Below are positions 27,261 to 34,227 of a DNA stretch of 64,000 nt, one piece after another. Source of the stretch: Utricularia gibba (Eukaryota > Plantae > Magnoliophyta); NCBI GenBank assembly GCA_002189035.1, contig NEEC01000011.1, positions 1,798,001 to 1,862,000 on the forward strand, in the 5' to 3' direction. Both the position numbers and the translations under genes were made by a program. The number at the start of each line of letters is the position of its first letter. The first letter of the stretch is position 1. A model generated the notes under the pieces. That model was not told the origin of the DNA, ran no database searches, and was given only the letters and a program-made list of their open reading frames with translations.

Positions 27261-29113
27261 CATTTTTCATTTCTAGACATCTATAACGACCATTTCTAGT
27301 TTTTATAATCATATGTACAAGTGTTTAATTAGACTTTAAGAAATCAAATGCTTTTATTTTATTTTCCCAACCAAAGATATACTTTTTTTATTAAATCTAA
27401 GATAATCGACACATGTAAATGATGTATGATCACTTTTATAAATTACACGGCTTTTATGAACTGGATTCCAAACTCCCCAACTAGATCATCATCGTGCAAC
27501 GGATATCTTTCAATATTGGCCTCTATGGGAGCATTTATTCTGTATTTTCTAGTCGAATTATCCCCTTCTATACTAATATTTTTACACATTTGTCGTCTAT
27601 GAATTTAACATAAGCTTTGATTTTACATAATTATAATATATTATTATATTAGTAACCGACCAGATGCACTCGCTAGGAATTCACAGCACAGAAGGCCTCT
27701 TGGGGGCGGCTTGACCTTGGTTCCACGTGGACCAATGGAAAAGGTGCCGCGCTCTCTAAGGCCCCACCACATTGGAAGTTTAAACCAGAGTGGGCGCAAG
27801 CTTCCAAATACAGCAAATTTGTATTCTTTCAATATTTAAATCAATGCCGCGCCCCATCCCCTTGACTGACCACATAATATTTCTATTTTAAACATTTTAA
27901 AAATTCCCACATGTAGGAAAAATCTGATGAAAAACTATGCATTTATTTATCATAAAAATAATTGTATTATCCAATAACGTAAATTAATTTGAGAGTATCA
28001 AATTGCATAGAAGATATTCGTTCATTTCGTGGTTCGTGTATCGTTATAATTTTCGATTATTTGGTTTTGCGGGTTCATAATCCATATGGAAGAGTATGGT
28101 TTTAGAATAGCAGTTGGTTATGGTTGTGATCCCTACTCAACGCATGGGGCATGGGAACAGATGGAATAGCAATGGGATATGTACCACGCGTGTATCTAAA
28201 CAATTTAGAAAAATAAAAAAGCAACTTTAACTTTGATCATGTAGAAAGGGGTTGACTTTAGCATAATAAACACATTGAATCTATTCGAACTATCTTAGAT
28301 CATTTTTTTCACACATATATCTTGTTATGTTGTGGGTAAGAGAGAAACATATATATAATTGATGATAATATTTAAATTAAGTATCTAATGAATTAAGTGA
28401 TCATGTGTGAAACAAAACTATACAAGAAATGTGAATCATGTAATGACCTAATATTTTATTGTACAATATTTATATGTATTTTATTTATCTTGATTTTACA
28501 TTCTTCATTTTGAAAAAAATGCATTATATAAGATTATAGAAATTTCTTTATATAAATTGTATCGGTATCTCATCTGTAACCGATATAATATTTGATTAAG
28601 ATACTTCTACCTTTCTTTGGGTTGGATCCTTTCGCTCCCCATTAAAAATTCAGTGTTCTTGGTAAAGTTTGCCCCCACCTTCGATTATAGATTTAGGTTT
28701 GACTCTAATACCATATGTATTTTTACGATATTGTCTCTTTCGAGTATGCTATCATCTTGATTTTACCTTTATGTATCAATGTGAGATTCTTTATTTTAAT
28801 AGATAATATTCACGATTATTTTCCCTGTGTTTTAAGGGAAGAGGTGATTACAGCAACTTCCTATGAGTTTCTTGTATGGTAATTTACAAGCTTTATGCAA
28901 CTAATTTACAACCACAAACTGACTCCACAGTGCGCATTGTTTGGATCCAATGGGAGGAACCCAAACCGGCATTTCACAAATACACATCAACCAACAACTA
29001 AATTGTCTTATTTCTTTCTTTCTTTCTTCATCTTTATCATCTACTCCATGTTGTGTATGTACCGTACCAGATTCTAGACAGCAGCTGCATTGGGATGCTT
29101 TGTAAGCCTTTCT

Positions 29114-30073
29114 TTATATGGCTAGGACCCCGGTAGGGGCTCTGTGTGGAATGCCCTTTCGGCGCTTCACCGTCCGGTAGTTCGCCGGCAGGGGCGTCGA
29201 CGGTGAAAAGCTAGGGAATCCGGTGGTGGGCCGGCCGTGGCTGATGCTGCTGCTGTAGGAGTCATCAGAGTCGGCCGCCTCAAACTTGTTCTTTTTCTCC
29301 TTCTGAAAATTCTTGGATGTCCCAGCAATCTGATAAACACGGAAAAGGTCAACTTGGCGGATTCAGGGGGTAGAAAATTGGATTCGAATTATTGAATTGA
29401 GAAGAAGAGACAGGGACCTTGCAGCCCAGAGAGCAGAATCTGAATGAGTCAAGAAGGCTGCGATCACAAACGTGGCAAGTGTTCGTGACCCCTTTTCCAG
29501 GTCTGGGCTGTGGGCGCTCATTGAGGAAGACAACTTTGGCACTGTTGATTATGTATGTCTGAACAGAGGATATGTCCAAATACTTCTGGATTTCAGAAAC
29601 CCTAATCACATCATGGTAGGAGGATCTCCGAATCTGCAAAACTCAAATCTTTATCACTATAAACCCATCGGCGAACTCAAAACTCCGAGTCAACGCTCGA
29701 GAAACAGAGCAAATTTTGAGTAAGGGAGAAATTGGGGGATTGACCTGAATGGCGCGATGGTCCCTGTGATTAGATAAACAGAGGGAACAAAGAGGGCCAT
29801 TTGTGCAGTCCAGACAATACATATTACATTCGCTTTTATGGGAATCCACATGGAACTTGCACTGCCCAAAGAAGTGTTCTTTGAGCAAAGGTTTCAGCCA
29901 TGGCGGCCATCGATTGCCCTCCCCATCAGGCCCTCCAGCTCCCTGCACCACACCAAGTTAAAAAAACACAAAAATCCAGCAACCAAAAACCAGTACCCCA
30001 TACAAACCATGATTCTCCGATTGCAGGGAGGTCTGATTTCGCGAACAGGGGCTCCTCGATTCTCGATCGCCAG
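29114..30073 (-). CDS. PLATZ zinc-binding transcription factor; exons 30073(CTG)/30010(ATG)-30008, 29942-29745, 29633-29418, 29329-29114
   Basis: [20 protein letters not shown]...CNMYCLDC...CSLC...HRAIQ|[12 protein letters not shown]...[18 protein letters not shown]...FCSLGCK|IAG...[11 protein letters not shown]. Confidence 0.93.
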
Positions 30074-30689
30074 CTCAGAAACGGGCGTCAAAATTTGCGT
30101 TCCAATAGAAAGAGGAAAAGAAAGAGAGAAAGGGGGGGCGTGGGAAGGGAATGAGCAAGTGGAGGAGAAAGCACTCAGAGAAGAAATAGGGAGAAGAAGT
30201 TGACAGCAGCGCAGGTTCGGTGGGTGGGTGGGGTTGGGGAGAGCGATTTTTCTCGTTCTTATCCCTGAATGAACTCAGAGCCCATGAGCGGGGGCCTAGG
30301 CCCCCAACCAGAAGATAGATAGATGCCTTTGTCAACTCAACTACACATGAAAGACGTTCCTGTCTTCTTTGCTTTGCACATCCGATCCCTGTCCCTCTTC
30401 TCCAGTATCAATCTCTGGTCCTCCGCCCTAGTCATTCTTTGCTTGCAGTAACTTAACGGTCAAGATCCTCTACTCCGCGACACACCAGAAACTCATGGAT
30501 CCTATCATCACACGCGGGTGTGGGAACTTCAGTCAATTAATATTTACAAATCTCGACAACCGACTATATGATATATATATATATATATAATGTTTATATT
30601 AATACGAAAAATAAATGAAGAATGATCATATTGTAATGACTCTATAATATAATGTTATTGATGGGAAAATAAATCTATACACACCACTT

Positions 30690-31400
30690 GGATGTGAAAT
30701 CGGTAGGAGGTCTCAAGCCTATTCGGACGGTTTATGGCAGGCCGATACACCTCCAATATTCAGAGTTGGATAATAACGGTCGTTTTGACAGTCTTAAAAA
30801 TAGTTGAATTATAGAAATTTCAGAACCATCGACAATTATTAGAATCATAATACAGTTAACAGGCGTTTAAAAAAAACGACATCTATAAAATTCAATTGGA
30901 TCAGCTCCCCTTATAAATATAATGAAGTTCGAAGAAAAAAGATTTGAAATCTTTACATTCCACTTATATTCTTCATACTTCCTCCATTAATGAAACTGAT
31001 TTCCGACAAGTTACGACAATTTCGTGGTTTGTTTTTCCGTTTCCCGACGATTTTTAAGTAAAAATCCTTATCTCTTTTTATCTATTTTGCCCTCAACACT
31101 AACCCGAAATCGGTATTTTCCAAATCGGATTCTTCAAAACCCAATTTACAGCCCTGAAACTGGTCGAATCCAACAGGACCAATTTTCAACCGCAACAGTT
31201 ATAATCCAAAAATTGAATACATTTCAGAATATTAAAAATGATTCTATTTTATATAATTTGAATCCAAGATTAAAATACAGAAGAATCTCATTATCTCTTG
31301 TCGGAGTATTTAGACAAGACAAGCGTGTAATTATCATAACTTGCACTAAAAATGGTTATTAAAAGCCGAATCCTCCAATAAAAGGAGTTAGTTAGTCACG
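30690..31400. mobile_element. Possible degenerate LTR fragment (solo-LTR-like)
   Basis: Begins TG, contains ccgatacacctcc (resembles recalled Gypsy LTR 5' motifs) and TATA-like ctataaa/ccttataaata. Less AT-rich than its flanks. No TSD found. Confidence 0.3.
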
Positions 31401-34227
31401 CAACTGATGTGCATTTGCATTATTGGAAATCATGACTTCATCCAAAATACTGTCACAAATTATTGAGTACAATTCCCATGGCTATCTCTATTTTTGTTTA
31501 TGTTTTTTTTATTCATTGAAATCGACCTTTTAAAAATTTATTCAAAAATTTAAAATAATTTTAATAATAAATGAAAATTTACGCATATAAATTTAAAATC
31601 GTACTCTATAAATATATCTATTTTAAAAAGAATTCTATAAGTCTACAAATCACCTTTTATATTATTATAATTTTAAAAAAATTGAAGAGAAACCATAATT
31701 GAAATTATTATAAATTTATATCCTATAATCATTCACAATAGAGGGGATATAATTGGATTGATTCTAAAAATCACTAATTATAGAAAGAAGATGAATAAAG
31801 GTTTAAAATGTAGAAATAATTCTTAAAATAACCATTAATTCCATCAAAAAGAAATTATTTTTTAGGAATTATAAAGGTGAATGTTTTTTCTAGGGATAGA
31901 GAGTATTATTAAAGAAAATATTTTAATAATATATATTTAGTTTATATTTTAAGAATAGTTCTGGTAATAAAAAGAAGAGAGATATGACATGCCACGTGGA
32001 GGATTGATTGACAATGGGGGCATATAAAATAAAGTATCTGATGTGTCAAAATTCATTTCTAGATACGTGTAATCTTTTTCACTTGTTTAGAAATAAGAAT
32101 CATTTCTAATAATTTTTTTTTATTTTTAAAATATAATTCATTCATATTTAATAATAAAGATACCTATGAAATTATTTTCAGAAAAAGAGGTTGTTAGAAG
32201 TCTAACCAAAACATTTGCATGATGAATCTTACTATCTAATGTAAATCATCTAATAATATTTTGTATAATACATGAATTATTTTATTGTATAATTTATTCT
32301 TTTTGTAATATTGTATTCATTGGAACTATAACAAAAATTAACATGGATAGTATCTCATAATTTTTAATTATATTTTAAAAAATAAAAATTATTAATCTTT
32401 TTTGAAAAATCATTTCAAAATTAATTTTAACAGAATTAAAAATTATGATAGAATGATAATTATTATATATTTCAAAGAGTTTTTTAGAATGTTATTATAA
32501 AATCAATTTATGTTTGAAATGTAAAAAAAATGATTTTAAATAAATGATATATTTTATCTATATTTATTAATAATTATATTTATAAATTTATAAATTTAAA
32601 AAATACGTTTTGTATATCATTATATTATAAAAATATTATATAATTTTTGAATTATAATTTATATTGTTATTTTAATTTGAATATATTTATATTAACATTA
32701 TAATTTAAAAATTAAGTAATTAAATTATTTATAAAAAAACGAGTGTAAACAATTTCAATCTTATAATCTATTCTATAAAATCCATTTTTTTAAAGAAGCT
32801 ATTATCTTATGATTCTCATAGTGATTTTAAAAAAATTAATTTTGATAAAATAATATTCAATATATGTTTGAAAGATAAAAACAATCCTATCAAAATAGAA
32901 TTAATTTTGGGAAATTCCAAACTATTATTTAAACAAATTGCACACATTCTTCAATTTAATGGTGGTTTAGATTGAATGAAATTTAAGCATGAAGTGAACC
33001 CATGATCCTTACATGCGTCCACTTCACTTCTTGCTTAAAGAGAATTGATTCATTGATTCCAATTAAATGTCATGACATTTAATGTTTTTTTATATATAAA
33101 AGCAATATGAATAGAATATTTATCTAAGGCGGTAGAGGATGGTCAACTTGCGAACGATTTTTTATTCTTGCTACGACAACTACAAGGAATCCAATAATGA
33201 TGTTAACTGCTGGTCTGATGGAGTGGAGTAGGTTAATCCCTTTCTTGCCCAAGGTTTGATTACCATTTCCTCCTTCAGCTACACAAGCTGATGATCAGGT
33301 GGGAGGATGGAAGCCCGATTCCTCTCTTTTCCAATGGTGCTGATGCCTATGAGTATGAATAACTCGTGGACTATGTTCATCAGTATGAGTAGACTCGTCG
33401 ATTTAATTCAATTTTTTAAAATAAGAAAATATTTTGGATCAATTTAATGATTAATTATCTTTCTTTCTTTTTTTCCAACCCAATTATTAATCTCAATTAC
33501 AACCAATATTATATCAGATTTAGTGTTTCAAAGGTTTTCAGTTATATCATTTTCTATATATTTTCAATGTGGTTTTTAAATCAATTTTTTCTGCTATTTT
33601 GCTGCAAAATGGATGAATTAGAAATGTGTATATATCATATATTGTGTGATAAACTTAGTCAAACAAAATATAATTTTTTTAACTTTAGTGAGAGAATGTA
33701 CGGATAAACATTTTTCTAAATGACCTATAACAAGAGATGAATATGAGTCTTGACATGCTGGGAAGGGTTGTGATGCACCAAGGGAAGGGATTGGATAAAT
33801 AATACTTTGATTATAAATGAGAAAGAAGATGTGATTGAATATAATGATTACGTAAATTTTGTACGAAATTTTTTTTCAACGACTAGATCATATTCTTGGT
33901 AAAAATTTTAAAATTAAATGTTTTTAACTTGATCTTATTTGAGGATAGGTAAAAGTATAGATCAAAGATGAAAAAAACGTAAAAATGTGATTACTAAATA
34001 TTCGATCGTGATAATATGGAAAGTGTGCATGAGGTTCACTCCATGGTGCGCTGTGTGTAACAGCTGTGCAGCCTCAGCGCCTGGGAGCTGTGCAGGATTC
34101 GCTCAGAATTTCCCATATTGAAAACCGGTTTTGTATAGATTTATGTAGGTGGGGAGTTTCCTGTTTACAATCATCTGTGAGACAACTACTTCTTGTAGTT
34201 GAATTCTGTACAAAATCTGGTAATGAG

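Follow-up and report, generated by a model that had tools for sequence, protein, structure and literature searches.

A PLATZ gene predicted to start translation at a CUG codon that most of its orthologues share

In Arabidopsis, translation of FCA starts at a CUG, and the search that accompanied this finding looked for CUG followed by G together with conserved sequence running down to the main AUG (Simpson et al. 2010, Plant Cell 22:3764), as related in a later study (PMC6380273). According to this later study, the 14 regions of this kind (Simpson et al. 2010; Vaughn et al. 2012, RNA 18:368) include AT1G21000 and AT1G32700 (PMC6380273), which are AtPLATZ1 and AtPLATZ3, respectively (PMC6172764). 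CUG-initiated extension in PLATZ genes has already been predicted before. The extension filter of van der Horst et al. 2019 was a dN/dS below 0.4; AT1G21000 failed their purifying-selection filter, and AT1G32700 was found to be conserved only in Brassicales (PMC6380273). Roles in stress and growth traits have been ascribed to the family members AtPLATZ1 and GhPLATZ1, and the name RITF1 appears in records of the orthogroup studied here. Among the papers listed by our literature searches, none pairs PLATZ with CUG or near-cognate initiation beyond the mention of AT1G21000, and none deals with the breadth of a CUG start across the orthogroup or on its consequences for annotation.

Here, we analysed a window of 64,000 nt (the whole stretch of DNA under study) which contains, on its minus strand, a gene for a PLATZ protein of the AT4G17900 or ‘RITF1-like’ orthogroup. 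The full-length product of this gene probably starts at a CUG at 30073-30071, and this reading is based on the invariance of CTG GCG among orthologues, the coding-type variation of the extension, the end of conservation at the start context and the lack of any upstream AUG in the mRNA. Like AT1G21000 and AT1G32700, the window gene is a PLATZ gene in which a CUG followed by G is in frame with, and joined by a conserved peptide to, the main AUG. As described, the two Arabidopsis genes differ from it in that one (AT1G21000) did not pass the selection filter and the other (AT1G32700) is conserved in Brassicales only, whereas here conservation extends from magnoliid to asterids. Moreover, the only Arabidopsis sequences among the close relatives were the AT4G17900 product and a 226-aa protein of the ATG type (P0272), which suggests that AT1G21000 belongs to a sister clade. 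The closest named Arabidopsis homologue is AT4G17900 (AtPLATZ11), which has the same N-terminal peptide and an exon 1 that ends in ...RRIM at the intron; its annotated first codon, taken from the protein record, is Met, whereas the window gene and most orthologues outside Brassicales have CUG.

Other described systems are more distant. FCA (AT4G16280) is also a plant nuclear regulator, and its full-length protein is made from a CUG that precedes the first AUG and has G at +4. It encodes an unrelated protein, however, and a published summary says that it ‘consistently uses’ this CUG and rates the conservation of the site as poor (PMC6380273), whereas the CUG predicted as the start of the PLATZ gene is deeply conserved. 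POLgamma2 and other dual-start plant genes have a CUG and an AUG used by leaky scanning, as is proposed for the window gene, and in both cases two in-frame starts could give proteoforms that differ by an N-terminal peptide (PMC6380273, PMC7605272); the extension of the POLgamma2 type is an organelle-targeting signal, whereas the 21-residue PLATZ peptide has no recognisable targeting signal.

The gene has four exons and spans 28877-30156, as determined from the window sequence and contigs of spliced RNA, and all features below are on the minus strand. A CT-rich, AUG-free 5′ leader (30074-30156; contig ends at 30156 in X1 and 30149 in X5) precedes the proposed initiation codon CTG (30071-30073), which is followed by the N-terminal extension of 20 conserved codons (30011-30070), delimited by alignment to homologues and by pN/pS, and by an ATG (30008-30010) that is the last codon of exon 1. 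Intron 1 (29943-30007, 65 nt, GT..AG) is removed in the X1 contig, which joins 30007/30008 to 29941/29942; loose contig ends at 29943 were seen in X1, X5 and X10 and read GGAGAATCAT on the gene strand. Exon 2 (29745-29942, 66 codons), bounded by contig joints and up to 84% identical to PLATZ proteins, carries the first zinc-binding motif and is followed by intron 2 (29634-29744, 111 nt; joint 29633-29745 in four of four runs). Exon 3 (29418-29633, 72 codons) encodes the PLATZ domain and matches PF04640 with E = 1e-32 and 113 bits (cut-off 25) over profile positions 1-78 of 79. Intron 3 (29330-29417, 88 nt; joint 29329-29418 in X1, X5 and X10) separates it from the coding part of exon 4 (29114-29329, 71 codons plus TAA at 29116-29114), which gave tblastn matches to the C-termini of homologues, and the 3′ UTR occupies 28877-29113 (contig ends at 28877 in X1 and 28880 in X5).

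PLATZ proteins as a class bind A/T-rich DNA in a zinc-dependent manner. Two motifs are said to have been described for them by Nagano et al. in 2001, namely C-x2-H-x11-C-x2-C-x(4-5)-C-x2-C-x(3-7)-H-x2-H and C-x2-C-x(10-11)-C-x3-C. In the translation, exon 2 reads CKFH-x11-CLDC-x5-CSLC-x3-HRDH (C-x2-H-x11-C-x2-C-x5-C-x2-C-x3-H-x2-H) and exon 3 reads CHVC-x10-CSLGC (C-x2-C-x10-C-x3-C), and both Cys/His zinc motifs of the family are thus present. In the promoter region, about 400 nt upstream of the 5′ end seen for the PLATZ transcript, lies a (TA)n microsatellite (30562-30600); this repeat and those at 29002-29037 and 30103-30134 were skipped when RNA contigs were placed.

On the minus strand, exon 1 reads ...ttctgag CTG GCG ATC GAG AAT CGA GGA GCC CCT GTT CGC GAA ATC AGA CCT CCC TGC AAT CGG AGA ATC ATG, directly followed by the donor gtttgt. 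The first-pass annotation, made from the letters of the DNA, had described an exon 1 reading gagCTGGCG with the CTG at 30073-71, G at -3 and at +4, and an AUG only as the last codon before the intron, all of which the sequence matches exactly, with the two G at 30076 and 30070. The ATG at 30010-30008 abuts the GT donor, is the sole ATG of leader and exon 1, and after splicing has A at -3 and G at +4. Upstream of the CTG, the reading frame stays open back to a stop at -204 nt, with zero in-frame ATGs between. Within 300 nt 5′ of the CTG, ATGs occur at -275 and -212 only, and both are upstream of the transcript ends seen.

Contigs of four public runs, from organism A and the related organisms B and C, were placed on 28600-31600. 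All three introns were found as contig joints (CT..AC on the plus strand, corresponding to GT..AG), and since the contigs are without them, their source is spliced RNA. Two contigs of organism A, X1 (study P1) and X5 (study P2), span 30007-30156 and 30007-30149 with 0 differences from the window. Thus the CTG is preceded by at least 76-83 nt of mRNA, all of it AUG-free, this being a minimum 5′ reach that is compatible with a true transcription start elsewhere and with shorter transcripts starting 3′ of the CUG. Because the leader is ATG-free, no AUG of the mRNA comes before the one that ends exon 1, the proposed start of a short form. The contigs of organisms B and C cover at most 10 letters of exon 1, with the CTG outside their reach. 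Their sole differences from the window lie in exons 2 and 3, at 29775 (B, T>C; Leu TTA>TTG) and 29601 (C, C>T; Arg AGG>AGA), and both are at third codon positions and synonymous by reading.

The RNA bears directly on two other explanations of the CTG. The C at 30073 could stem from a mistake in the assembly, or from a mutation private to the sequenced individual that recently disabled an ATG, and CTG does differ from ATG by a single C/A change. The same base was found in RNA contigs of two separate studies, so it is not an assembly error, and CTG is present in 11 of 12 orthologous loci of other families, so we give this explanation next to no weight. Alternatively, an unseen upstream exon with its own AUG could be spliced at an acceptor of the form ...YTCAAG/CTG, making the CTG an internal leucine codon. 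An AG does precede the CTG in the window and in eight other CTG loci, the remaining three having AA, the stretch before it is pyrimidine-rich in the window, and the X1 contig has 23 unmatched letters past 30156. Against such an exon, however, contigs of the two studies are colinear with the genome for 76-83 nt through the site, with 0 differences and no joint; the 23 letters join at 30156 without a preceding AG, are ATG-free and gave no match anywhere in the 64-kb window when up to 3 mismatches were permitted. In addition, transcript-derived Logan records (P0168, P0209, P0223) run from non-conserved leader straight into ...FKLAIENQ, and in-frame stops lie 42 nt (Paulownia) and 60 nt (Asimina) upstream. 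We therefore regard an upstream exon as very improbable, and initiation at the CUG itself as the preferred reading. The 23 letters, which read AGTGCAGTGCTCCGATATACGGG on the gene strand, are regarded as adaptor sequence or as a chimera of the assembly; since they end in GGG, a template-switch adaptor is conceivable, and a capped 5′ end would then lie near 30156.

Homologues were collected with exons searched singly. Exon 2 alone, searched against 1.84 billion representatives, gave 476 hits, and the AT4G17900 product (P0003) was then used as the query of a word search. The N-terminus of this product (P0003/P0151) is MAIEDQENTIREIKPKNRRIMGAGGP, and the 21 codons that start with the CTG and end just before the ATG align to it (MAIEDQENTIREIKPKNRRIM/GAGGP). 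The N-terminus that the first-pass annotation had given for Arabidopsis-type homologues, MAIE... before GAGGP, is thus correct, and its alignment of the 21-codon extension to a conserved N-terminus holds against AT4G17900. The extension is also homologous to the annotated N-termini of many other PLATZ proteins. Records from eudicots, a magnoliid and Proteales have three types of N-terminus: MAI[ED]NQ...; (F)K-L-AI[ED]NQ..REIKPKNRRIM after unrelated leader-like sequence; and MGAGGP.

DNA was read at 12 orthologous loci of a magnoliid, Proteales, rosids and asterids, with the window as a 13th sequence. The start codon reads CTG GCG in 11 of the 12 (Fragaria, Gossypium, Glycine soja, a second locus in Glycine max, Pisum, Cichorium, Eucalyptus, Macadamia, Asimina, Paulownia and Sesamum) and ATG GCG in one (Mikania); with the window counted, the first codon is CTG in 12/13 and ATG in 1/13, and the second is GCG in 13/13. 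The comparison of start codons across orthologues had been proposed in the first-pass annotation, whose statement that homologues carry Met is correct for Arabidopsis and some other lineages but not for most orthologues, which have CTG. Position -3 is a purine in each of the 12 CTG sequences: the window has G, the 11 others have A. At -2, A is present both in the nine CTG sequences of the base-by-base alignment and in the remaining CTG loci that were read. In contrast to CTG GCG, each of the two invariant Arg columns of the extension uses 4-5 different codons. Upstream of about -6 from the CTG, base identity collapses.

Within the extension, variation is of the coding type. Its length is 60, 63 or 66 nt across loci, and thus every indel is a multiple of three. 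From the CTG to the terminal ATG, which is present in 13/13, zero stops and zero out-of-frame ATGs were found in 13/13 sequences, and an in-frame upstream stop without an intervening in-frame ATG is present in the window and in 6 of the first 8 loci. The pN/pS ratio, calculated pairwise as a simple proportion ratio of the Nei-Gojobori type rather than by a codeml test, was 0.30 in the extension (9 sequences), compared with 0.88 where this frame was continued upstream; pairs that include the window gave 0.39 in the extension. Compared with the other species, the window extension has diverged further, by the changes Q>R, E/D>G, K>R and K>P and by an inserted Cys. Together with the G instead of the usual A at -3 and the pN/pS of 0.39, this divergence makes a weakened constraint on the extension possible in the window lineage.

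Thus, a near-cognate codon in good context is followed by a stop-free in-frame extension, the upstream transcript is AUG-free, the extension appears to be under purifying selection and conservation starts at the conserved start codon, as is expected of a conserved non-AUG 5′-extended main ORF in the sense of Simpson et al. 2010 and van der Horst et al. 2019. The CUG initiation put forward in the first-pass annotation gains support from CTG GCG in 11/12 loci, from the pN/pS of 0.30 versus 0.88 and from the AUG-free leader. The observations that could have spoken against it turned out otherwise: the RNA has CTG and not ATG at this codon, the contigs begin 76-83 nt upstream of it, and the ratio in the extension is low.

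These data also bear on the simplest alternative, namely that translation starts only at the AUG at 30010 and that the upstream similarity is an untranslated relic of an ATG-started N-terminus or a regulatory element in RNA or DNA. In its favour, translation starts at an AUG by default, this AUG has a strong context (A at -3, G at +4), several orthologues have models of the RefSeq type that begin with MGAGGP, and the window extension is somewhat diverged. However, a relic would decay, but the peptide has been kept from magnoliid to asterids, with variation of the synonymous type (0.30 versus 0.88 upstream), indels in threes and neither stops nor out-of-frame ATGs in 13/13 sequences. Third-position wobble is not expected of a nucleotide element, no conserved structure was found, and CTG and ATG replace each other at precisely the same codon. 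A start at the AUG only is thus improbable in our view, and initiation at the CUG is retained as the better account.

In the mechanism that we propose, ribosomes would scan the AUG-free leader of about 80 nt, and part of them would initiate at the CUG with initiator Met-tRNA, favoured by its context (a purine at -3 and GCG as the next codon). This start would yield a protein of 231 residues that includes, at its N-terminus, the 21-residue peptide conserved among orthologues. Ribosomes that do not initiate at the CUG would next encounter the AUG 63 nt downstream, which is in frame and in a strong context with no AUG between, and initiation there by leaky scanning would yield a form of 210 residues without the peptide. 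Both protein forms would be made in this way. An RNA structure that boosts use of the CUG was also considered and was rejected on two results: RNAalifold on nine exon-1 sequences detected no conserved hairpin after the CUG (3 pairs, -0.41 kcal/mol, no covariation), and leader plus exon 1 of the window fold no better than shuffled sequences (z = +1.14).

The 21-residue peptide would act, as we infer, as a short interaction or regulatory motif. The influence on localisation or stability that the first-pass annotation had suggested may likewise exist. The first-pass annotation had called the extension a basic peptide; this is true of its core in orthologues, KPKNRR, but less so of the window, which reads RPPCNRR and replaces two lysines relative to REIKPKNRRIM. 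Since the core has this form in the window and a clearer basic stretch, KRRKGIPHR, is located at the C-terminus, we did not assume a role of the peptide in nuclear import.

If translation starts as predicted, the AUG-only model would fall 21 residues short of the full-length protein, both for this gene and for most orthologues, and expression constructs with the AUG-only form would omit a peptide conserved since before the magnoliid-eudicot split. Public proteomes mishandle the conserved start in three ways: the model begins at the downstream Met (MGAGGP...), it begins at a far-upstream ATG, or the CTG is written as M. As to the last, the Pisum (P0188; L009:1001-1060) and Sesamum (P0157; L011) records begin with M (MAF... 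and MAI..., respectively) where the genomic codon is CTG, and thus a leading M in protein records is not trustworthy. In both records the coding sequence was taken to begin at the CTG and this codon was rendered as Met, which hides the non-AUG start. In the Glycine max record P0187, ‘MLAF’ corresponds to AAG CTG in the DNA. In many models of the orthogroup, ...KLAI[ED]NQ comes after 20-100 residues that resemble leader sequence and are not conserved (P0158, P0161, P0171, P0174, P0180-P0184, P0190, P0195, P0196, P0201, P0202, P0206, P0218-P0220, P0227, P0232 and others), and these N-termini from far-upstream ATGs are likely to be spurious.

Annotated residues also affect how often the start codon seems to have changed. 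A tally of Met and Leu taken from protein records (41 M versus 36 L, 13 changes) was discarded as an over-estimate, since two of three checked ‘M’ records are CTG in the DNA. States were recounted from Leu read internally, loci verified in DNA, and RefSeq or TAIR models, which generally start at ATG. On a quick tree of homologues without the window gene, in which deep branches are weakly supported, at least six changes between CTG and ATG were counted. Lineages with ATG (Brassicales, Juglans, Prosopis/Neltuma, Salvia, Amaranthus and Mikania) are nested among lineages with CTG, and SH-aLRT support is 98% for an Asteraceae clade in which Mikania has ATG and Cichorium has CTG. The presence of ATG in at least six separate lineages among CTG ones is an argument that either codon can serve as the start. 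Judged by these codons, CTG is the usual state of the orthogroup and not an oddity of the window genome.

A broader interpretation can be offered tentatively, and we hold it to be possible rather than probable: CUG would be the ancestral and prevailing start of this PLATZ orthogroup, with CUGGCG pre-dating the magnoliid-eudicot split, AUG would have replaced it independently in Brassicales, Juglandaceae, mimosoid legumes, Salvia, Amaranthus and Mikania, and the weak start would have been kept elsewhere because the ratio of long to short form is regulated, e.g. by start-codon stringency under stress. If this were true, lineages that switched to AUG would have lost that regulation. The natural alternation of CUG and AUG among close relatives offers ready comparisons for the purpose of the weak start codon.

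Two further arrangements were noticed among the orthologues. In Myrtaceae, the Eucalyptus locus (L005) and four records (P0203, P0205, P0215 and P0242) have an in-frame ATG 15 nt 5′ of the CTG (MQHFK-L-AIENQ), and this upstream AUG may have taken over there, with CTG GCG still kept. Exon 1 of Macadamia (L006) and the Proteaceae-like records P0237, P0256 and P0263 carry an extra in-frame ATG (..PT-M-KEIKPKNRRIM); the in-frame Met of Macadamia is the only extra ATG in the extension among the sequences read. Some Proteaceae-like records begin at this ATG, which is possibly a third start site in Proteaceae.
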